DNA of 64,000 nucleotides from Ascidiella aspersa (Eukaryota). The notes beneath the pieces were generated by a model that was not told the origin of the DNA, made no database searches, and worked only from the letters and a program-made list of their open reading frames with translations. The stretch is taken from NCBI GenBank assembly GCA_963924565.1, contig OZ004610.1, positions 5,518,001 through 5,582,000 on the forward strand. Direction: 5' to 3'. Numbering within the stretch: the first letter of the stretch is position 1; the number at the start of each line of letters is the position of its first letter. Shown one piece after another: positions 16,797-34,551 of the stretch. The position numbers and the translations under genes were made by a program.

Positions 16797-16930
16797 ATCA
16801 AAGCCCATACAGAAGTACATAGTTGAAAATGAGTGTACAACCAAATTGAAAATGAATAAAACATAGTGGAAAATTAATGAAGAGTTATTCGAAACGTTAA
16901 AATGCTACCTACTTCTGTATGGGCTTTGAT
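16797..16930. mobile_element. Short MITE/hairpin downstream of the MBNL stop (probable 3'UTR)
   Basis: Perfect 21-bp IR ATCAAAGCCCATACAGAAGTA / TACTTCTGTATGGGCTTTGAT; half-copies at 21026-21089 and 21657-21720. Confidence 0.75.
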
Positions 16931-17635
16931 ATTATTTTTACGTTTACTACAACCTCCAACCATTATGCTCCAAAATGTGAGGGCGAAGTAAGTTGCCGTG
17001 CTGCCGCTTAGCCGTGCGGTCGATAGGTAAAGCGCTTTGCCTGTACACAAAGTGCTGCAGACGTGGCCGCCTGAAAAGGTCATGATTTCTTGCGGTGGCG
17101 TTAATCCAAGGCCATAGCCCGGAGCTAGGCGCCGATAAACCAGGAGTGCTGTTGCAACTTTTGGCCGAAAGGATACACGCTGCCTGCTACGGTTTACACA
17201 CCAAATAAGGGTCTCGGCAACTTGAGATAAAGTAAACTATGGCGCTTATTTAGCCGTCCGATCGATAATGTGTTCGGTTTTTAGTCTGTGGTGAAAAAAC
17301 AATAAAGACAATACTGTCTCGCTTCTGAAGCGAAACAAGGAACCCGATTTCGTTGGCGAGAATGAAAAAAAACACGATATATATGTATATACACACAGTA
17401 CACGGAGAACAGGCACAAAAGGAGAACCAAACGGCGAAATCGGAACACAAAGAGCGAAAAGTGGTACGCGAATATGGGAACAGGGGGGTGGGTTGACAAA
17501 CGAAAAAAAAAATCCGGGGGTTGACAAAAAAGAGCACACAGGGATAAAAACAGCGACGGCTAGTCGCGGTAAAAAGGCTTCGCTTTAAATAGAACGCGAT
17601 CGAAGAGCAATGGAACTTTGCTGAACTGAAGTAGG

Positions 17636-17877
17636 TCATACCCCGGATGGGTCGGCGAGCCCGTTGGGGTAACCGTGGGGCAGAGTAGGGAGAATCCCGC
17701 CGGAAAGGACACCCATAAGGCTGGGGTGACCCAATGCGCTGACCGATTGACCAGCGGGGGCATCTACGGTTGCGAAAGCGGCTAAAGGGTGACCGTCCAT
17801 AATTGACCGGCCCTCCGCGGGGCTTGTTGGGTTAGAGGGAAGGTGGTAGAACTTGCACTGGTGTCGGGTGCAACGCC
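17636..17877 (-). CDS. MBNL: MBNL last coding exon (ZnF6 C-half, stop)
   Basis: [14 protein letters not shown]...DPSGV*. Confidence 0.82.
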
Positions 17878-20800
17878 CTGATGAATAATGGAGAAACATT
17901 GGTTATTCCGGGCTTGCAGGTCAAACGGTGGCAGTCGTGTAAAGATTTGCCATACTTAGTGTTTTATTTTAATTCCGAAAGCCGAACGACAGTGATCGGC
18001 AAACTGTTTCTGCCGCGGCCAAAAAGTACTCAATTGGAGCTATTGAAGCATTACGACAACAGGGTAAAAAAAGAAGGGGAAAGCTTTTAAGCTTTTAGCG
18101 ATGGAAAATTACCCAAAAAGCGTAAATTTACGACGTGCTATTGGCCTATTGCAGCCTTGTATATGGAGTTGCAATTTGCTTCCATGATAAGACACTAATT
18201 ACATTTGTTGCCCAATTTCACGGTGTTTTATTTGAACTATACCTCCTTAGGTAAATGGCGGATTTTGTTCGTTTACCATTTTTGAGATACCTATATATCT
18301 ACATCGATCACAGACCATAATTTTAAAACAACAGAATACGCTAACAAAAATCTAAGCAGTGAAAATGTGTGAGATTTAGAATTCCTTAACCTGGTGCGCG
18401 AAGACGTTTTCTGTGTTTTATCTCAAAAGAAGTGACGCCCTAACAGTTTCGTAGTGCTTTACAAAGTAATACATAATGTAATATTTAGGTTAAAAGCTTG
18501 TGACTGGATCACAAACACTAAGAAATACGGAAAAAATGCTCACTTAACGTTGAACAAATATACATAAAATGGCGCCCATCTTACCTTGGAGTGCGTTGCG
18601 GCAAACGGTCACTTTATCGTCTTTTATTTCAACATAATCTGCAAAGGAAGAAAACTTATTGTTAGCTTGAAAAGGGAAACATTTGGGATAAGCTTATTTT
18701 TGATTGCTGAAACAAAACTGAACTGGCGCAAAAGTGAATTAAAGGAGTTGAAATTACAACAACACAATGCAGCAGTGGCTTAGCGGCCTGCTTTCCACTT
18801 TACAGATTAGTCGAGTCGAAAGGTTGTAGGTCAATAAAATTACGAATGCGGCCGGTGTTATCCGCGAAGAAAACCCACATAAAATGGATGCAAGGAGATG
18901 TGTGCCGTTTTGCTACTATTAGTTAAACTATATTTCTACTTCTACTTTGACCTGATGAAGCACGGTTGTGCGAAAGCTTGTCATGGATCCATACAGTTTG
19001 TCTTTATATAGTGCCACGTTGATTACCCTTAAAATTCGTCAAATACGGCCGTTTACAAATCTTAAAATACTACAGTTAGATTTGAATGGGAAGGAGATTG
19101 ATTCTTTTTTTGTAAGTTTTTTGATTATGGAATAACAAAAGGATTCTATCAGGTTAATTATTTTCCAAAACGTAAATATTGTGCAAATTTGTAAGGTTGA
19201 ACTCAGATGACTTTTGTATAGGTAGATTTTCTTTACCAGACAGCAGTTTTGTAGTAACATCAATTTTGAAAAAAATGGAAAACTATGAAGGTATTACCAC
19301 TGATGTGTAACGGTTATTTCAGCGAAAAAATCTAAATGTAAACGCTTCGAGTGGGTATAATACGAGTAGCCGATATAAAATTGATGATATTAAATGGAAA
19401 TAAAACAAAAAAATAATTGCGCAACTCGTTGCCCGGCGAATTACGGTCGCAAACAAATTACAAGGATTAATTTTCAAACAGAGTGAAAACGAACATATAG
19501 AAAAGGCCGTTCAGGTGTAGTGGTATACCAGCATATTTTGTAGTGGCATACCAGCATATTTTGTAGTGGTATACCAGCATATTTCCTGCAAAAACTTAAT
19601 GTGTGTGCGAGAATCCACTGGAACTGTAGATAGGATAATATGCATAGCGGTCAGAGTCAGGTTCGGCTGAGGCAAAAATTGTTGAATGAGATGCTGTTTC
19701 AAGGTTATGTGGGAAGCACAAAGAAATAAAAAAAAAGTGAAATTTAAAAATTGTGCACGTACGAGTACTACTTGGAAAAATTTGGAGACTTAGACCAAAT
19801 TTTAGGTAAAAGTTGTGATACAGATCTGTTTAAGCTATAGAGAAATCCTCGTTCGTCAAACCGGTCTTGTTGTTCGAAATTGCCGTATGTGGACTTCAGA
19901 GGTTGTAATCCGTTACTGTTTTTGTAATAAAACGCGCGTTTTTAATTTGCGAGCGAAATTAAAAGCTCGCAGCATCTGATATAAAGTGCGGCCATTTTGT
20001 CATCAATTTCATGCTTAATTACATTAGCGCACAAGGTACTGGAGTCGCACGACTCACAAAATGTAATTATTTAAAACAATTAGGAATGGTAACAGCAACA
20101 TTTGGCACAATCGCCGAAGAATTTGGGATTAAAAAGTAATATGCCCAACTAAGGCACCGGACAAAAAAAAACATTGGGAGTTTTAGGACACTGACAAACA
20201 AGACCCATTAAAAGAACATAGTAAAACTACATCCGCATTAATAATGTCATTATTTTTCTGTCGTTCTCAAACGCGTTGTTATTGAGGTCATTTGAAACTC
20301 TAACCCTCTAGTCGACTAGGACAGAATTAATGCGATTCGTGGACGACCCATGGGTTTATAGACACGCGCGCGAAAGAAAGAAAAACGGTGCAAAAAAGTA
20401 ATTAATTCGTGCAGCCGATGTCAGCCCACAAAACACCACGTAAACCAGAGATTGCGTGCAACGCGGGGGGCACATGCTGCCGTTGTAGGTTACAGCCGCC
20501 GATAATTGCTGCTGCGCTATTTCAGCACTTCTTCCCGGGCTCGCTATACCTTCCCGAACGTGAACAAAACGGCAGTAGGGCCGCACGCACTTTCCCGACT
20601 GGTAGTCACGGCACACTGTCATGCTGGTAGCGCCACCCGCGGACTGCTGCTGCTGTTGACTCTGATGCTGTTGCTGTTGATTGGACATTTGGGCTTTCGC
20701 CGTGGCGTATTCGGCGCTGAGCTGTTGTCGCGAACGTCCCAAGGTATAGGCGGGTTGGCGTAAAGCAAGCGGTGAGTAAGGGGAACACGAGGCCGGTTAG

Positions 20801-23800
20801 TCAAGGTTACAGGGTTTGTGGCAAGCGAAAGGAAATCACAGTGCGCTATACCGGGAGATGCCGCATCGTATTAGATCGATGCTGTGGCTGGTTGAGTTGT
20901 CGTATTGCCGAACAAATTCACACAAAAATGTGTAAAATTTTAAGGTAACTGGTAAACATATTAGGCTTCGGAGCATAATGGTTGGAGGTGGTAGTGAGAC
21001 GTAATATCTGTGCCTTCTTACAATGTTGAAAATGAATAAAGAGTTATTCGAAACCTTGAAAATGATACCTACTTCTGTATGGGCTTTGATATTCTTATTA
21101 CATATTAAGCTTATATAATATAAGTCGTGGAAGTCAAATGAGGGTATTCAAATAGGCAAATAAGATTATTAGTTTTTAATTTTTTTAAAGTAGTCGCGAA
21201 CCACTTTGTTCAATTCACTTCAAAATTTCGATTTTTATCGAACTTAAACTCGTTGCTTATTGACATCTCCCGGTATCGCCATACTGATTAGGTAACGTAT
21301 CACATACAAAGCAACGTATAGTCAAAAAAGCGGTCGGTTAGTAGGGTCAGTATGGACAAAACAACGTCGACAAGCCGCTATAGTCTAAACGCACACACAT
21401 ACACAAACGAACGAGCTTGGTACAGTTAAACGTCAAAAAGTACATCAAAATGATCTAAAAACACCGACCTGGCTGGTTTGGCCGTTGAGCAGAGCGTAGC
21501 TAGCAGCAGCAGCCGCCGATCCGCCAGGGGCGCTGGCGCTGGTCGACGGCAGACTGAAGGCTGTGAGCTGTGCACTTTGGGCGGCGCCTGGTCCGGCTAA
21601 CTGGAGCATCGGGAAAGAAGCGGCTGCGAGGAAGGTAAGGGTAACAACATTGTGTGTCAAAGCCCATACAGAAGTGGGTACTATTTTGAACGTTTCGAAT
21701 AACTCTTTATTCATTTTCAAAATGACTATGTCCATAGAATGATAACCATTAAACCGATAAAAGGATGGTGGAAACGTTAGGTCTAATTTAACGGCAATTA
21801 AAAAAAATAACATTTCTTAAATTTGATCACAAACATGTACATAACAGTAGCCAAGAAATGCTATAGTAATCAAGATGATTTTATTTAGTGGTAAAAGAAT
21901 ACATATTGATTTCGTCAGCAAAGGCACCGTGAGTATACCTTAATTCAAATCAATGGAAAGAAAAAAAAATGTATTCAGCATTTTATCCCACCCAAATACA
22001 AAGAATTGTGCTTTGAAAACTCAGCCATACACTTATCAAACATTTTATTTAGTGTTAAGCATATTCAAAAGCATCGTCAAGCATGCCTTGATTCGAATGA
22101 ATCGAAAGAAAAAAACCTGATCTATTTTGCATTTTTTTTTCAACCAAATCCAAAAACAACGCATAAGTGCGACTCATAACTGGGTCATTTTCGCGATCAC
22201 ACGGCTAAGCAAAAAACCAATCCACCTATACACTTACCCTGCTGGTAATACGCAGTGGGCGAGTGCAGGCTCTGATGGGGCAGAGTGGCCAGTCCCTGGA
22301 GGGCCGCCGCGTTGCTGTAGCCGTACAGCGCCGCCAGGGTCGCCGCGTTCTGGGAGCTGGTGGGGCTTGGGGCCAATCCGGGGGAAGACCCGAGTCCGGA
22401 AGCCGATGACGTAATAATGGACGACTCGAGGGCGTGTCTCTTGAGCGGTGGCTGACCGATGCCCGAGCCGTTGGTCATCTGCGCAAGGGAGAATTGGGAG
22501 GTGTGGTGGTTTGGGGAACGGACTTTTGTCAGATTTTTTAAAAGTTATTTGCGCGTGTTTGGCGCTAGGTCGGAGACGTTTATTGCGAAGGTCAACTGTG
22601 GTTGACAACGTTTAGCTCAGCGTTTCTCAGCCTTTTATGGCTAGTGGCACCCCTCAGAAATAATAAATAGATTGCGGCACCCCTACAAGAATTTCCGTAG
22701 GTAATTTGCTAGGATGTTACAATAAACGGAACTGGAACTACACACATCAACTCTACACAAAGAAGGAAGTCATAATTAAAGTTATTCGACTCTTACACAA
22801 AAATAAAAAAATATTTTCAACATGTTAAACAAGCGGGAGTTTATGGGTTTTACTAACCACGAGAGAAAAAATCTGAGATTAATTGGTGTAAAGTTAAAGT
22901 CTGGAGGTTTGATCGCATAAAAATGATAGAAATGCTTAAAATGAAAATGAAAATCTTTAAACTCAAAAGAATATTTAGAATAACGTTGATGTCCGATTGT
23001 TGTGAATATTTTTTCGTTCAGGTGTTTAAAGGTATAAAAGTCTACAATGCTCTCTTTGGAGTGCGTAAACAGTTTAAGGGTATCATTTAGAGAAGGGTCA
23101 TATACTTTGAAAAGGGTCGACAAGTGGTCCAACGGTGACAAATTGATGATTAGGAAAACACAAACAAGGCGAAAAACCGGTAGCAAGTCATGCAGTCGTG
23201 AAAAGTAAGACACAAGTCGCCCAAGGGCCGCATGCAAAAAAGGCTTTCCCGGTTAAGTAAGCCGATACCAATTAACGCATAACGAACACAGCGTATGGTA
23301 ATCAATCAAGCTCACAAAAGCCGTCATTGAAATTTCAAGAGCGCTTTGTATACAGATCAAATTATGGGAATATTTGGGGTAAAATTTAAGTATATTTAGT
23401 TTTATTTTAGCTTACCACGTCCTCCAGTGTAAGAACCCGTTTGGGAGCCTTGTTAGTGGTGGGGTGGTGGGGGTAAATTTTGGGGTGAGACGGGGTGAAA
23501 GCAGGCAAGAGGTGAAAAAGCGGGGGGGTAACAAGCAGAAAGCGAAAAGAAGAGCAGCAGTGGGTAAAAGAAATAATAAAAATCGCCATTAATCAGTGGT
23601 AAAACTCATTTAAGTATAGTTTCAAATACAAACGCTTTACACCTCGTCAGTGGTAATTAATTAATTATAGTAATGACAAAGCATGGCAAAGGGCAGTACA
23701 TCATTTTTGTATAACTATATCGCTTTATGTTTACAGAGAGCTATACATTACAATAAACGAAATGATTGCACGTGAAAAAATGACATAAAAGCCATATGAC

Positions 23801-26800
23801 TGCTATTTGGTATTACATATTTCTAATCAATTCATTGCAATGAAAGAGCAAGACTTGTTGTTGTATTTAAGCATTTTAAATAATTTGTGTGTACAAACGT
23901 AGTTTTAATATTACGATTTTGCTTGCATTAAGAAAAAAAATCTTCGGAAAAAAGGTTCGGAATTTAAAGAAAAGTGAACGAGAACTAGCCGAGATATGTT
24001 CGATTGCTGAAAAAGGAAAGGTAGCAACATAAGGGCGCACCAAGGGCCTCCGGTTAACCGCGCACCTCTTTATTGCAGTTAAAGCACACAAAACACACAC
24101 ACGCACACCAGAAACACTGCAAATTACTACGTCGACAACCGGTTGGCATTCCGGCTGAAAAATCGACGACATGCGAGGGAAAGACGAAATAAAACAAAAC
24201 AGCACTGCCATGAGTGGATGTCGTGCGTTTATATGACGACGGCATTATGAGCATTGCGGGATGCAGCGGCTGCTAAGCTCGGTCAGGTACCAGCCCCAAT
24301 CGAAATGTATACGTCGTACAGGGCTCGAAATTTGTTTTTTGGGAATATTTCGAGCCCTGCGCTGGTACGAGGCCCAGCAAAGCGGCCGATCTTTCGCAGT
24401 GCTTAATGGGACCTACCATGACGGTGGGCTGCGGTGTTAGTGACGGCAGAAAAGCGGCGGCGCCCGGATTCTGAGCGGCGCGGATTTTGGCCTGCAATGA
24501 ATTAAAAGCAAAAACACGGGGTAAATTGCTGGGCGCGATCGGCCGGGTGTGAAGGGGGTAAGCGGTAGAAGGATGTCCGGCAATCTGTGCATTGTTTCGA
24601 TACGGACAACTGGTATTTTGCGAGCACCGATACCCGATATTATCGGACATCCCTAGTAAGCGTGACGCGGTAGCACATAGAAGTCGTGACACGATGCGCG
24701 CAGCTGTAGGTGAGGAAACGCCGTTTCCACGCGTTCCAACAGCACCGCTGCATTAGAAAGGAGAAAATGACAATGAAATAAGCGCGGATTCACGCGTTCG
24801 ATTAAAATGGCGATCGAAAACGAAGTTTGAGATTCGCTTTTCGCGCCACGAAAAATCACATTGAGGGCTGTTAAAAGGGTAGGAGGTAATATGGGCAGAC
24901 AAATCAAGTTCGGATAAGCTCAGATTAGGAATTATACCACAAAACCGATTGGGTACACACGCGGTCTTCAACGCTTCTCTTGCTTTGCTGTTTTTTGAGT
25001 TGACCGAAAATTTACTGAAAAAGTGGGATGACGATTTGGTATAGACATGACTCCGCGGAGTTGTTTTTTTGATTTATAAATTAACCTTGTTTATAACCCA
25101 CAAAGTTATTCTACCAATTTTAAATCAAGGGACTACGTTTTAAATAACCTTATACGATTGCTATGGCGTTACATGGAGGCCAGTCAGCTGTCTTAAGCAG
25201 TTTAAAACTTATAGAAAATTTAAATCAACTTGAATTGATGTCTTAACTTAACACGGCCATTTTGATAGGCCCACCTGAATATTTGTCTATAGCACTCCCA
25301 AGCGACAGGTCAAAATATATTGACGACAGTCTTGTAATGCGTTTATAATGAATGACTTGACCTACGCGTACTTAAATACTTGTCATTAAACTACTTTATA
25401 CAAAAAACCTCGGCAAATTGACTGAAATAAAACAAATACGGGACAAGCGTTTACGGAATCAAATAATAAACAATCAAAATACGGGACGAGTTATCGATTT
25501 CAATAGTTTACCATTTGTTCTATATTCAATGATTTAACTTGCCATTGTATGATGTCTTTTATTTGAAACGACTGGGCTTGGACTTATTCGCAAGCAAGTC
25601 AAGTTGGACTTACAGGCCTTATAAAAAAACAATTATATAACAAGGATTTTTTTTTAAATTTCAACCTAAATCTGAATTTTCCATTTGACGTAGCAGGGTT
25701 AATACTGAACCAAAGGTGCTCAGATTTGGTTTGTGTGGTTTTTAATCGTAACCTAACAATTCTTGGGGGGCCCACAAAAATTCGAAAAAAAGTGTTTTTT
25801 TGATCAATATACAAATTTCAAAATCGCATTTTGATTAAGGTCTAGACATGTATATGACAAAAAAGCATACGAAAACGCCGACGGCAAGCGCCCTTACCTG
25901 CAGATGGGTGGGCGGGTGAAAGTACTTGCACTTCTCGCGCGTGCACCGGCCCTTGATGCAATCCATGCAGACCGTGACCGTGTTGTCGGTCACGTCGATC
26001 ATCGATCTGTCCGGTGGGTGGCAGTAGCGGCACTCGTACTCGCCACGTGTGCAGTTGCCACGTTGGAAGTCGCGGCATACCTGGGTTAAGGAAAGCGGGT
26101 GTTCTTGTCAAGCGTTGTACGGTTATATGTTTGGAGTTTTACATTCTCAACGGACACCGAGCTTAAATCTTGTCTGTCCGAAAATGTTAACCCGGGAAAT
26201 TGTTTTTGTCTAAGGCAGGGGTTGCTAACCTGGGGTACGTGGACTCCTTGGGGCTACATGAACTAGTTTTAGGGGGTTATTAAGGCCTAATTGAATTTTG
26301 GGTGTATACTTTTAAAACTTGAATGAATTTATACGTTAGGAGTTTCGCAGTCTTAACGGGCACTAAATTTTATCTTGCCTGTCCAAAAAGGTTGATGTCG
26401 TTTTTTTTTTAAATCGGGCGAAATATTATGTTCTTCGAAAACTTCGAAAACCCTGGGGTCCGTGAACTCCTTGGGGTACATCAACTAGTTGAAGGGGGTC
26501 CTTAAAGGCCTAATTCCATTTTGAGTGTATAATGTGAACAATAGAATAATTTTTTTTTACATTTAAAAAAAAAACACGTTACTTTATGAATGTATTTCAG
26601 CATCACATTTGCTGGAAGTGGATTAAGGAAAAGGTGTTCTTGTCAAGCGTTGTATTGTTATATGTTAGGAGTTTTGGAGTCTCAACAGGCATTAAATTTA
26701 AATCTTGTCTGCCCCCCGCCATTTTAAACAATAAAACGGACGAATTTTTTTATCCCTCAAAAACCTGGGGCGATTTTGTTGTTTAAGGCAGAGGGTTCTT

Positions 26801-29800: not shown

Positions 29801-32800
29801 ACGGTCGTTTTTCTCTGTGTTTCAATGAGGAGCAGCAAAATCTGTGTATCACGATCTTTCGTGCACGCTGGATGCAAGTAGCGATACCAGTATTCATTCA
29901 TTTTATTTCAAGGGAGCAGCTAATTGAGGTGTTAAGAAACAAAAACTAAGGGTCCTAATTTGTATTGATGCTAACGGGGGTTACTTTTATCATGAGTTAT
30001 CATTGTCATTCATATTTACTTCCTGGAGGCTGGATTCTTCACAGTGACTTTCCGAACACTTGACTACACACTACTTGTAATTTTTTAACGTAGATATTTG
30101 TTAAAAAATCGAAATAAAAAGCGAAAAAGCAAATCAACAAAAAAACGCGATCTTACCTCTAGTTTGTCGGCCCTGAAGGCACCAGCAGAGGGCAGCATAG
30201 CAGCGGCCATTTGCTGTGAAGCTGCGTGTTGCGCGAGCGCCAACTGGTGGTGACTCGGTGACGCAGCGACCGGGTAATACGTCATGTAGTGCTGGTTGAG
30301 ACTGGACAGTTCAGCTGCTGAACGGTAATGGAAAAGTACTTGTTATTAAGCCGCCCTGAACTGCGTCGTATAGCCGGCGAGACAAGTTTGAAAAAAGGCG
30401 AGAGAAAATAATTTATTGGGTCGGTTAATGGCCGCGTGAAAGCGATTATTTGTGAAACTGATTGGATCTATAATGGACAGTGGTTCAACGAGAATTCAAC
30501 GAAAAGTATTAAACTTTTTTTGACAACTCAAAAACTCGTTTGATGCTGTTTTTTTTTCGATACGCCGGTATAGACGGCGAGACGAACTTTGCCAGAAAAA
30601 AAGAAAAAAAAGGCTAGATAAACTGATTTATGGTGTCGGTTAATGGCCGCGTGGAAGCGGACTGGGTCTACATTGTACAGTGCTTCTAAGAGAACTCAAA
30701 CTTTTTATTTAAACAAAAATGATTAAGATTTTTAACAGCACAAAAACTTGTTTGATTATAATGAATGCCGAGGCCAAAAGGTCGACCAAATCGAAATCAT
30801 CTTGATAAAGACGTTTCGATGCGCACTTCTATCATCATCAGTTAAAGTGTATAAGTCAAGATGATGTCGATTAAGTCGAAGTATTTGGCTTTAAAGTTCA
30901 TTGTCAAGATACATTACAGATCCGCGCATAGTGTTTCTTAAGTATGTTTGTATCCAAAAAAACTCCTTTTTCTCACTAAAAATAAAATTTTACCCTAAAC
31001 TATATTCTTTATAAATACAAACTTAAAGTGACGTGGCAGAAGGAAATAGAAAACGAATATTTTTCAACATTCATAAATATGTGGTTAAAGGCCAATTAAA
31101 TGCTAGAATTGTTCTTTAAAGTAGTTACTGATAAAGGCGTATTGCGCCATCTTTTTGCTTAGCCTTTGAGTTTAAGAGAACGTGCTTATTGATTTGATGA
31201 ATGCTACGTCACGTCAGTTTCGTGTCATGCATTTAAAATATAGCACAAAAAGGAAAATTTCACTGTCATAAATATTTGTGTAATATTTGCCACTAAGACA
31301 GTTATGATTACTGTAAGACAGGCAACTTATTTTTTACCGCGGACTGCTAAATTATTTTTTTGCCTTGCATAGACCAAGGGTCGATAAACATTTTTTTGAG
31401 ATGACGTCACAATACAAATGAACTTCAGAAATTCGCTGTTTCCAGTCCAAAAATGTGAAAGTGAAATGGAATACATTTCTGGGCAAAGTTTTTTTTAATT
31501 AAACTTTTTTCTTTAAAAAATTGATTAGTTTTTACATTATACTAATATTTCAAGTAGGCTGTAATGGACCATGCAAAACTTGTCCACACACCTCCGAGGG
31601 GTCCATGGACCCCTGTTTAAAAACCCCTGCTATAAGGGAACATATCAGTTCATGGTACACAACCTTTGTTCACCCAAAAAACTAACACAGCACTCAATAT
31701 TCATAAAAGAACATGTTGCAAGACTACGCGCGTCAGCTGAAAAAGCAGCACACATATATATAGCCACGGCTAGGAGCGGCGGCGGGCACACTGCTGGCTG
31801 CTGCGGCTGCGCAAAAATCGCACACGCGAAAAGGTGGGAAAAAACACACAAACGAACAAAACACAACAACAGGTTGCATCTAAACAGAGCGCAAACACAA
31901 AGTATACCTGAGGGCAGAACGCTGTAAGTGGGTGTACCAGCGGCGGCCGTCGGAGCTGCGATGTTATGGTTATACAGGCTGCTGTGGAGGCTGTTGACCA
32001 TGTGGGCGCCGCTACCCCCCGTCATTTGCTGCAGGTTGGGACCAGCCGCGGGGTACAGGTGGGGTTTAAGCAGGGGGCGTGCACGAATCAACGGCAAAGT
32101 GGGTTCCGGGGATTTTTTAGTGGTTGGGTGTTTTTTTAGGGTTAATGGTCAAACGAAACGGGGTATGGGTGAAAGAGGAGAAGAAAACAAATATGATTAG
32201 AACACGCTATCGCGACACACGCCACAAAAAAGCAAAACAAGGGCAGCATTGTTAGTAGGCTAACGTTACAGAAAAAAACGCTAACGCCATGTGCAGCTTT
32301 TTAGCGCAAACTGTCTTTACTTGTTTATCCACACCCTCGTGGAAAAATTGTAGGCGCGAAACTCCTACACCATTGTCGCACTTGCTCTATAACACTTAGA
32401 GCAATAGGTAATGCGAACCTTAAAAAAAAATAGAATTGGAGGGCTAGAAGGAAAGTGGCTACCAATAAACTTTGGAACACAATACACGTTTTTTTAGTAA
32501 TGTTTTTTTTAGTAATCTTTTACACTGATGATGGCATGAGGTATTGCTGAAACGTCTGTAAATTGCGAAATGTCGATTGTATCGAATATTATGGCTTTGA
32601 TATTTTTTTATTTTTTTTAGGGAAGTGTCAGGAGTATTTGTTGTGCGCATGGCCAAAGAAAACTCAAAACCGAATCTTCCGAAACGAAAGGTACTAAGTC
32701 TAAGTGCCTGCTCGGGTGACGCGTCGTCCGGGTGCGACCTTTAAGCAGTCATTCGGGTCCACTTCACTTCCAAGTTGCGTAGGAAAACTTTAACCCAGAC

Positions 32801-34551
32801 TCACACACACCTGAAGCAACGACGACGCTTAGAGCTGCGAAAGTTGCCAAGCGCCGTTAAATGCTTGTCCGACGCGCGGATAAACGCGTTATTAGCGGCG
32901 ATGCTTTTGGCTTGACGGCGCAGCAAGACGAAACAACGCCCTTGTTTGAATAGGCGCTCGGAACGGCAGAAAACAAACAGGCGGCAGCGGCGGGATCGGC
33001 GACGGAGCTTGACTTTGACGTCAGACCGATCCTTCGTACGTCTATGCATTTTTAACGAGATGCGTACTATGGCCGGTTATAGGTTTTTGCGCTTAAGATG
33101 TGAATTTAAAATTTAATAAATTTGCGTCTAAGTTATAATTTTTTTAACGAGGTGATGCTGTATATGGCCGGTTATAGGTTTTTTTGCTTAAGACATGAAT
33201 CAAAAATTCATTAAATATGCGCTTTAAGAATAAATTAACATTCAATACATTTGCGTCTTTTGAAGTGTATATTGAACGTCATTTTTAATAATTTTACAAA
33301 TTAACAAGCCTATTGGCAACACACAATTTCGCTTGCCACATTGTTGTTCGCACTAAGCCCTAAGCCCTACATGCTTAAAGTACGTAAGTCGGTTTAACGT
33401 TGTTTTTTACAACGGCGTACCACGTAAGATTAGAGCACGCTAAAAATACACACAACTTGTACATTTGTTCTGTTATGCCAAAGAAAAATGCGACGGGGTC
33501 TTGCTGCCGAAAACAAATCAACATTTGCGAACTAATTACTGTTCGGAAATTGGCCGAACAAGAAGGTAGCATTATATTTCCCTAATGCCACTCAAACGCT
33601 TTTTTCGCGATGATAGATTAATAAAAAAACGCGTATACAAACCTAACTTTGCCTTCGGTGCCAAGTGTGGATTGCGAAAAAAAAACATTTACCGCTGTAT
33701 AACGGGCAAAAAACCTTTGACGAAGTACACTTAAAGCGCTGAGCGTTAGGCACACTACACTCGCGGGGTTGCGCAAGAAGGCTATAAAACTAGCGAAACG
33801 ACACGGCTAACATGCAGCAACGCGGTACAAAGGGCTTTTGTCGATTGGCACAACTTGCATTGCACGGTTTTCCACCACAATGTCACGTCCCTCTCCAACC
33901 TTAGCTCAGGTTCGACTGTGGACTTGGTTCACCGGTTTCGAATTGAAAAACAAATTACCAGCGCAATTTTATGGATCGATGTCCTCTTGCCTTAAAATTT
34001 TAAATCGAAAACATTATAAAACAAAAACAGCTATATACAGTGAGATCGGCTACCTTGTAAATGTCATAATGGCGTTTAATGTTAGTTTTAAAAAAAAAAG
34101 ATATTTTTTGAAAAATTACGTGAACGTGCTTCACGGGCTCCCAAGTGGTTGACAAACCATACATTGTGAACCTCTAGTTATATAAAGCGCATTTCACGTA
34201 AAACCATAGCCACCAAACGACTGTAACTAAAAAAAGTGGTTAAAAATTCCGGTGAAAAATGTGACATGGGCAGTACAAGGCGTCCAACGCAAGCTATACC
34301 CAGGAAAAAAACGCCCCAAAATAACTTACAAAACAACAAAACGGCAAAACAGCAAAGGTACCCACCTCATAGCTTATAAGGCCGGCGCTCTGCGGCAATG
34401 CAGAGGCCTGGACGACGTTTTGCTGTAGAGGCAACATCTGCTGGAGCATGGCCCGGTTCTGTAGCAGGGTCTGGCGACCGGTGATTTCGAGCTGCTGCTT
34501 TAGTTGGTAGGTGGGATGCAGGTACTTGCACGATTCGCGGTTGCAGCGGCC
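17636..34551 (-). CDS. MBNL: Muscleblind-like CCCH RNA-binding protein, 5'-partial (ZnF1 exon not found in window); ZnF2-ZnF6 present
   Basis: Minus-strand exons 34551-34366, 32028-31908, 30317-30157, 26080-25898, 24491-24417, [23448-23416], 22478-22238, 21623-21469, 20721-20550, 18638-18585, 17877-17636. They total 1590 nt (1623 with the microexon) in one open frame. Signature peptides [29 protein letters not shown]|[24 protein letters not shown]. Confidence 0.93.
18585..18638 (-). CDS. MBNL: MBNL 54-nt exon, ZnF5-6 linker and first Cys of ZnF6
   Basis: TTTGCAG| [18 protein letters not shown] |GTAAGA; phase 1/1. Confidence 0.88.
18948..18983 (+). ncRNA. Minimal type I hammerhead ribozyme motif (family A, intact core)
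   Basis: UGAC-CUGAUGA-A-GCAC(GGUU)GUGC-GAAA-GC-UU^-GUCA; palindromic AGCU. Confidence 0.78.
19516..19584. repeat. Tandem repeat, 3 x 23 bp
   Basis: TGTAGTGG(T/C)ATACCAGCATATTT x3, no spacers. Confidence 0.95.
20550..20721 (-). CDS. MBNL: MBNL polyQ plus ZnF5 exon
   Basis: [12 protein letters not shown]...[19 protein letters not shown]. Confidence 0.88.
21469..21623 (-). CDS. MBNL: MBNL low-complexity exon (155 nt)
   Basis: [13 protein letters not shown]...LLNGQTSQ|GTCGGT; phase 1 to 0. Confidence 0.83.
22238..22478 (-). CDS. MBNL: MBNL exon with LKRHALE NLS-like motif
   Basis: [18 protein letters not shown]...YYQQ|GTAAGT. Confidence 0.9.
23416..23448 (-). CDS. MBNL: MBNL 33-nt cassette microexon ([11 protein letters not shown]), likely alternative
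   Basis: AAG|...GTG|GTAAGC; phase 0/0; 154-nt AG-free upstream zone. Confidence 0.72.
23451..23604 (-). promoter_or_regulatory. AG-exclusion zone with distant branch point and YGCY cluster (splicing regulatory element)
   Basis: No AG for 154 nt on - strand; CUGAU branch candidate at 23593; 7 YGCY within ~23499-23562. Confidence 0.7.
24417..24491 (-). CDS. MBNL: MBNL exon after ZnF4
   Basis: [25 protein letters not shown]|GTAGGT. Confidence 0.9.
25898..26080 (-). CDS. MBNL: MBNL ZnF3-ZnF4 exon
   Basis: [61 protein letters not shown]. Confidence 0.96.
26081..27260. repeat. Degenerate tandem duplication (~4 units) of the ZnF3-exon acceptor region plus a MITE end
   Basis: TTAAGGAAA..GGTGTTC.TGTCA.GCGTTGTA at ~26086, ~26622 and ~27001; partial unit at ~26330. 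Confidence 0.85.
28297..28389 (-). mobile_element. Family A hammerhead-repeat copy (degenerate core)
   Basis: Reverse complement of 18942-19027, including tail TTTGTCTTTATATAGTGCCAC. Confidence 0.72.
28949..29227. mobile_element. hAT-like MITE
   Basis: CACTGCTTTCCAACC / GTTAGGAAGCACTG; 8-bp flanks CGCTAAAG and CGCTTGAG. Confidence 0.68.
29493..29642. mobile_element. Family B copy, reverse orientation
   Basis: AAGCCAAAAAGGTCGAGTAAATCGACATCATCTT...TCAAGCTACATTACAGATCCG. Confidence 0.7.
30157..30317 (-). CDS. MBNL: MBNL linker exon ending RADKLE
   Basis: Ala/Gln-rich; donor GAG|GTAAGA; NAGNAG acceptor. Confidence 0.9.
30761..30924. mobile_element. Family B copy, reverse orientation
   Basis: Same arms and terminal ACATTACAGATCCG. 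Confidence 0.7.
30806..30845 (-). ncRNA. Hammerhead ribozyme motif (family B), sense to MBNL intron
   Basis: UUAA-CUGAUGA-U-GAU/AUC-GAAA-CG-UC-UUUA; core intact, weak helices. Confidence 0.55.
31908..32028 (-). CDS. MBNL: MBNL linker exon (121 nt)
   Basis: [40 protein letters not shown]; needed for phase 0 to 1. Confidence 0.8.
32519..32562 (+). ncRNA. Minimal type I hammerhead ribozyme motif (family C)
   Basis: UUUACA-CUGAUGA-U-GGCA/UGCU-GAAA-CG-UC^-UGUAAA; perfect 6-bp helix I. Confidence 0.72.
34366..34551 (-). CDS. MBNL: MBNL exon, ZnF2 C-half plus linker
   Basis: CACAG|[39 protein letters not shown]...SYE|GTGGGT. Confidence 0.93.

Follow-up and report, generated by a model that had tools for sequence, protein, structure and literature searches.

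The muscleblind (MBNL) family is described with one or two tandem pairs of CCCH zinc fingers (ZnFs), because the field has grown out of work on myotonic dystrophy and on the proteins of human, fly and worm. Four fingers are described in a 2025 review, with inter-finger linkers of 14 and 16 residues in the MBNL1 pairs (PMC11837677), and insect Mbl isoforms contain either a single tandem pair or two (Irion 2012, PMC3315501). Among tunicates, the Ciona 'Zinc-finger X1' protein has served as CiMBL in splicing assays, in a study in which finger number is said to vary and a third pair is not mentioned (Oddo et al. 2016, PMC5041496). Here we analyse a stretch of 64,000 nucleotides from the tunicate Ascidiella aspersa (contig OZ004610.1, positions 5,518,001 to 5,582,000; hereafter the window, numbered from its first letter), which by homology holds most of a single muscleblind gene on the minus strand. 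The last three exons of this gene, A, B and C, encode ZnF5, an inter-finger linker and ZnF6, and thus a third tandem pair. By its length and phase, exon A is a cassette that switches the reading frame of the two exons behind it, such that the third pair is predicted to be optional.

By collinearity, the window gene is an ortholog of six-finger proteins that have already been annotated, and in sequence it stands nearer to Ciona than to Styela. The Ciona intestinalis 'zinc finger protein' X1 and X2 (XP_018671400.1, 603 residues; XP_009862110.1, 592 residues) and the Styela clava muscleblind-like protein 1 X1 and X2 (588 and 575 residues) have six fingers in three pairs, like the window gene. Placing the Ciona protein P0160 on the window by tblastn yields ten exons, which span ZnF2 to the C-terminal tail in an order collinear with X1, and they are collinear with the six-finger Styela X1 as well. 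ZnF5 differs between Ciona and the window at 2 of 18 residues, the linker between ZnF5 and ZnF6 is identical, and a motif in the tail of exon C aligns with Ciona's PDLMGLISNGLV. Unlike the Ciona and Styela proteins, the window gene has a longer glutamine-rich lead-in in exon A, and the tail after ZnF6 is only loosely similar. Literature searches covering six fingers, a third pair, ZnF5/6, and muscleblind in Ciona, lamprey and cnidarians found no paper describing a third pair; a conserved, optional third pair thus appears to be undescribed in the searchable literature.

The third finger pair and its reading frame

The third pair can be read directly from the exons. Exon A opens at the acceptor cag/CTC, runs through its glutamine-rich lead-in into ZnF5 and closes at the donor G/gtatag; exon B (acceptor ag/AT, donor G/gtaag) supplies the linker plus CRNALQ(G); and exon C (acceptor cag/GG) completes ZnF6 at 17843. 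All of these borders follow the GT-AG rule. Read across both splice junctions, ZnF5 and ZnF6 are 15 residues apart, counted from the His of the former to the first Cys of the latter, a linker length also found in most third pairs of relatives. Both fingers have the form C-x7-C-x4-C-x3-H, and all eight zinc ligands are intact. The initial annotation, made from the letters of the window, had placed such a pair downstream of ZnF3/4, with this spacing in both fingers and with junctions at 20550/18638 and 18585/17877. The pair and its spacing are borne out by direct reading and by conservation in other tunicates, and the junctions were exact.

On a contig from Tara Oceans (L002; ENA ERZ17089476, 2255 nucleotides), the three exons recur with unchanged borders and phases, and alignment to the window is confined to them. 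Compared with L002, the finger of exon A has 7 synonymous differences and no non-synonymous one, and exon B has 6 and 1, respectively, in the finger frame, with the opposite pattern in the other two frames; the finger frame is under purifying selection. Each piece of the pair is short, which is the sole point in favour of a chance resemblance to finger patterns in intron or untranslated sequence. That idea is refuted by the conservation of all three exons, with borders and phases, in L002, Ciona and Styela, together with the significant matches to MBNL1 structures given below, and we assign it virtually no weight. In two further contigs, L003 and L004 (Tara Oceans PRJEB4352), as in L002, the three tunicate-type exons are packed into 2.2 kb, compared with 3.1 kb here; the three contigs probably come from a pelagic or larval tunicate.

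How might the third pair be brought into frame? RNA evidence was drawn from one RNA-seq run with 151-nucleotide reads (X4) and one run with spliced contigs (X3). The initial annotation had named, as a result that would count against a muscleblind gene with six fingers, that these exons are never spliced to upstream muscleblind exons. What is found is that exons B and C are joined to each other by 16 reads (17877/18585) and to the muscleblind exon ending at 21469 by 4 reads and a 1381-nucleotide spliced contig (18638/21469), a joint that skips exon A. Because the donor at 21469 is in phase 0, exon B then reads ATT ATG TTG AAA TAA, that is IMLK and a stop (TAA at 18626-18624). Ciona and Styela are annotated with both forms: a four-finger protein ending in ...NGQSQIMLK (Ciona) or ...ILLK (Styela), and a six-finger protein continuing as ...NGQSQ/L...CRDFQSGKC... 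The equivalent of the 172-nucleotide exon A measures 142 nucleotides in Ciona and 82 in Styela, as deduced from the protein models. Each of these lengths leaves a remainder of one when divided by three, so that inclusion puts exons B and C in the finger frame.

Judged from these phases and lengths, exon A is a frame-switching cassette and the third pair is optional. We envision that with exon A included, exons B and C would encode the linker and ZnF6, and translation would yield six fingers and terminate at 17636, and that with exon A skipped, exon B would stop after four codons and the classical four-finger protein would result, the rest of exon B and exon C becoming 3' untranslated region (UTR). 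In insect Mbl, likewise, pair number varies by alternative splicing of a single gene, with pair 1 split by a large intron and pair 2 on a single exon. Unlike in the window gene, the insect isoforms (Irion 2012) concern pairs 1 and 2 only, whereas the pair considered here belongs to a third class, which is also present in RefSeq models of Aedes albopictus and Lepidoptera. In the hagfish Myxine glutinosa, one of the isoform models X4 and X5 (P0023, P0178) has ZnF5 and other sequence in place of the linker and ZnF6; to judge by these models, the third-pair exons may be used alternatively in hagfish too.

Probable use of exon A in Ascidiella aspersa

In all likelihood, at a probability that we put at roughly 85%, the six-finger isoform is made in this species. 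Inclusion of exon A is deduced here from coverage, from coding constraint and from annotated relatives. In X4, exon A is covered to a depth of 10-14, and at 20300-20499 the depth is 0; with 151-nucleotide reads, such a drop would be hard to obtain if the reads did not leave at the 20550 donor. L002 retains the exon with its borders and phases, and the synonymous divergence from L002 described above is what a translated finger frame would leave. In addition, a Ciona protein record (NP_001071913.1/BAE93303.1) holds ZnF3 to ZnF6, and from its accession type we take this record to be derived from complementary DNA (cDNA).

Several observations weigh against inclusion. For the cDNA check that the initial annotation had proposed across its two junctions, 18585/17877 is borne out by the 16 reads, and 20550/18638, like 21469/20721, is not among the joints listed for this species. 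The sole assembled messenger RNA contig, from X3 (depth 110), lacks exon A, over which X3 depth is 11, equal to that of the neighbouring introns. X4 reads are also found upstream of the exon A acceptor, at 20786-20901, with a depth of 6-9, and part of the coverage of exon A may come from unspliced RNA. Moreover, exon A alone scores below the Pfam zf-CCCH_10 cut-off (21.6 against 27 bits).

Exon A might instead be a relic in this species, with only the four-finger isoform ending in IMLK being made and exons B and C serving as a short C-terminus and 3' UTR. Among the joints listed, the sole upstream joint of exon B skips exon A, as does the X3 transcript, in which exon A stands at intron background. 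A relic would not be expected to retain its frame, both splice sites and eight zinc ligands, nor to diverge from L002 in its finger by purely synonymous changes (7 against 0). In exon B, it is the finger frame in which the changes are synonymous; past its stop, the IMLK frame shows no such pattern. X4 depth over exon A is 2-3 times that of the flanking intron and falls to 0 just past the donor, and both isoforms are annotated in related tunicates. We thus regard a relic as improbable.

Alternatively, an internal promoter immediately before exon A might drive a separate protein of ~145 residues that contains the third pair and starts at the ATG at 20688-20686. The X4 depth at 20786-20901 is near that of exon A itself, the reading frame ahead of exon A closes at ~20797, and short proteins with nothing but the third pair exist in the databases (P0085, P0093, P0083), possibly as fragments. 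Yet the acceptor at 20721 and the first residues behind it are conserved (LSAEY here, LSRDY in Ciona, LTSDEY in L002), which fits splicing from upstream, and all full-length relatives join the third pair to pair 1, pair 2 or both. No pile-up of read starts is reported upstream of exon A, and 20900-21100 is a high-copy repeat that attracts reads. A separate protein is therefore very improbable, and the six-finger isoform spliced through exon A remains the reading that we prefer.

The intron stretch 20722-20901 is covered by RNA at a depth of 6-9, compared with 0-2 farther up the same intron (21100-21499) and at 21900-22099. This coverage could reflect retention of the intron next to an exon under regulation, an exon that extends farther upstream, or transcription that starts internally.

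Predicted fold, distribution and origin of the third pair

What might the third pair do? Exon A alone matches ZnF3/4 of MBNL1 (PDB 3D2Q) with an E value of 3.1e-7, and P0093, a natural protein fragment consisting of the third pair alone, matches the same structure at 2.4e-14. The AlphaFold model of this relative has a predicted local distance difference test score (pLDDT) of 82-89 over the pair and superimposes on 3D2Q and on the RNA complex 3D2S with a root-mean-square deviation of 1.3-1.5 A over ~62 columns. The Phe residues in CRFVH and CKFYH occupy the positions aligned to Phe202 and Tyr236 of MBNL1, which stack on a GC step (PMC9780971). With human MBNL1 ZnF3/4 (3D2Q, 3D2S) and ZnF1/2 (3D2N), the third pair shares the tandem CCCH arrangement, the spacing C-x7-C-x4/6-C-x3-H, a linker of 14-16 residues, the stacking aromatic residue two positions before the His, and the Arg and Gly positions. 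It differs from MBNL1 ZnF3/4 in that its first finger has x4 rather than x6, its linker has 15 residues, and the first His is followed by V/L-x-E-D instead of H-P-x. The position of Tyr224 in ZnF4 (CMDY) is Ala in the third pair (CRNA here, CRDA in most third pairs), and this conserved Ala might alter RNA contacts.

From homology and the predicted fold, we infer that ZnF5 and ZnF6 together (TZF3) form a compact two-finger RNA-binding domain like MBNL1 ZnF3/4. Its function is most likely that of an extra module at the C-terminus that binds GC steps. MBNL1 ZnF3/4 holds the GC steps of YGCY motifs, and a six-finger isoform would accordingly be expected to bind one or two more GC steps than the four-finger form, or sites with another spacing.

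The third pair is widespread in database models. A word-based protein search with exon A returned one fragment of 94 residues, and the same search with the Ciona third pair returned Ciona and Styela only. The word search is blind here, because of its length window and its need for exact words, and a profile built from exon A was therefore run in a full HMMER search, which gave 256 hits. The best full-length ones are the Ciona and Styela proteins named above, which marks the window gene as a tunicate muscleblind rather than an insect one. The third pair is found in models from sponges (Sycon, Oscarella), corals, molluscs, Trichuris and Trichinella; among arthropods, in ticks, spiders, a barnacle, a shrimp, Lepidoptera (a moth) and the mosquito Aedes albopictus; and among deuterostomes, in a crinoid, a starfish, hemichordates, tunicates, hagfish and lampreys. 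The initial annotation held that the common fly and worm isoforms have two fingers, which is right for the isoforms that have been studied and does not extend to the genes, given that mosquito, moth and Trichuris models carry a third pair.

A phylogeny of finger pairs, as suggested by the initial annotation, was built from 52 pairs over 61 alignment columns, in which Ciona and Styela stood for the tunicate third pairs. A branch with support of 96/98 separates every third pair, from sponge, coral, mollusc, tick, spider, crinoid, hemichordates, tunicates, hagfish and lamprey, from all first and second pairs, and the third pairs thus form a group of their own. Exons A and B of the window are identical at 16 of 18 and 17 of 18 positions to the Ciona and Styela third pairs, which sit inside this group. 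The last pair of the two-pair proteins of Manduca, Trichuris and Anneissia also groups with the third pairs. On this tree, the third pair is an old class of its own and not a recent tunicate duplication.

Jawed-vertebrate MBNL1-3 differ from the window gene in being without a third pair. When the hagfish third pair was used as the query of a word search, matches came from lampreys, hemichordates and chelicerates and none from jawed vertebrates, although such a search is not exhaustive. Together these distributions are a pointer to loss of the third pair at the jawed-vertebrate stem. The initial annotation had proposed an ancestral module lost in vertebrates. Its ancestral part agrees with the single group formed by third pairs from sponges to lampreys, and a loss throughout the vertebrates does not stand, since hagfish and lampreys keep the pair.

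Three tandem CCCH pairs in the same order are also found in streptophyte proteins resembling 'zinc finger CCCH domain-containing protein 28' (Selaginella P0076, Closterium P0013, Mesostigma P0027, Ceratopteris P0047, Zea P0096), and the third pair of the Closterium, Mesostigma and Selaginella proteins falls, over the 61 columns, into the same group as the animal third pairs. Unlike the animal genes, these proteins have no known link to muscleblind function, and their pairs 1 and 2 fail to sort cleanly with those of animals. According to a 2025 review, plants lack the muscleblind family. Some of the streptophyte proteins have been named muscleblind-like by automatic annotation.

A broader reading, which we hold tentatively and at slightly less than an even chance, is that the third pair is an overlooked ancestral RNA-binding module of the whole muscleblind family, from sponges to lampreys, with binding itself deduced from the fold. 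It would possibly predate animals, given the sharing with streptophytes, and it would be gated by a frame-shifting cassette of the kind seen in three tunicates and on a related contig. Its loss would be confined to jawed vertebrates, and it would be missing from the fly and worm isoforms that have been studied. If this were true, then the jawed-vertebrate loss and the absence from those isoforms would account for a literature that describes only two or four fingers.

Layout and significance of the gene

The features of the gene in the window are collected in the table below. ZnF1 and the first half of ZnF2 lie on one exon 3.4 kb past the right end of the window (G000:C4:5585449-5585580, minus strand), which was located by searching the window's own genome with the ZnF3/4 exon as query. 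The initial annotation had assumed ZnF1 to lie outside the window, which is the case, and had named an incomplete ZnF1/2 pair as a result that would speak against its proposal; the pair is complete across C4:5585449-5585580 and 34545-34516, and ZnF1/2 and ZnF3/4 are thus both complete within one gene. Paralogs of exons A and C were sought in the same 308.6-Mb genome and none was found; both exons are single-copy.

Table. Exons of the muscleblind gene in the window, in the order of transcription
Feature	Position in window	Strand	Basis and remarks
Second half of ZnF2 (34545-34516) and start of the inter-pair linker	34342..34548	-	Acceptor cag/GGC, phase 0; tblastn with Ciona P0160 residues 79-156, E 1.7e-22
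Linker exon between pairs 1 and 2	31903..32052	-	Approximate borders; protein alignment with P0160 residues 140-187
Linker exon ending ...RADKLEV, directly before ZnF3	30154..30315	-	Approximate borders; P0160 residues 185-236, E 1.8e-10
Single exon with ZnF3 (26077-26018) and ZnF4 (25969-25916), the second tandem pair	25900..26083	-	Pfam zf-CCCH_10, 82 bits; 88% identity to Ciona (tblastn, over ZnF3/4)
Exon following ZnF4	24417..24497	-	Approximate borders; P0160 residues 295-326
Exon upstream of the 21623 exon; donor 22238 phase 1	22238..22479	-	Joint 22238/21623, 6 reads and X3 contig; alignment to Ciona
Exon ending ...ALLNGQTSQ; donor 21469 phase 0; splices directly to exon B and probably also to exon A	21469..21623	-	Joints 21623/22238 and 21469/18638; alignment to Ciona
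Exon A, 172-nucleotide cassette with ZnF5 (20613-20560)	20550..20721	-	Starts in phase 0, ends in phase 1
Exon B, 54 nucleotides; linker and first half of ZnF6 (from 18603) when exon A is included	18585..18638	-	Joints 18585/17877 and 18638/21469
Exon C, coding part: second half of ZnF6 (to 17843) and 67-residue tail; stop TGA 17638-17636	17639..17877	-	Sequence, RNA reads, Ciona alignment
Stop codon and 3' UTR of terminal exon C, transcribed at least to a repeat at ~16948	16948..17638	-	RNA depth 26-41 across 17100-17899; X3 contig piece 16948-17876

The introns that split ZnF2 (at 34548) and ZnF6 (at 17877) both fall at the Gly before R-C, with phases 0 and 1 and an offset of one nucleotide; this placement, read from the exon borders, neither proves nor excludes a shared origin of the two introns. 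A 67-nucleotide inverted repeat (21023-21089 and 21657-21723, 91% complementary) flanks the 155-nucleotide coding exon 21623-21469, and a further direct copy of it lies in the 3' UTR at 16861-16941. In DNA runs, the word depth at the repeat copies is 10^4-10^5, which makes this a very high-copy short element with the look of a miniature inverted-repeat transposable element (MITE). An exon placed between inverted repeats can be more prone to back-splicing, and no back-splice joint at exon 21623-21469 is among the joints listed. Around the three exons of the third pair, YGCY motifs show no enrichment over the rest of the gene, which leaves the idea of muscleblind autoregulation unsupported.

For this genome, the gain is a correct gene model, with a single muscleblind gene able to give four-finger and six-finger proteins by way of a single frame-switching exon. 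For the family, public protein models contain a third, well-conserved pair in most animal phyla and in jawless vertebrates. If this pair changes the choice of RNA targets or the affinity for them, then it would bear on how finger number and spacing set splicing outcomes, on what was lost in jawed vertebrates, and on the splicing assays already published in which the Ciona protein served as a 'distant homolog'.

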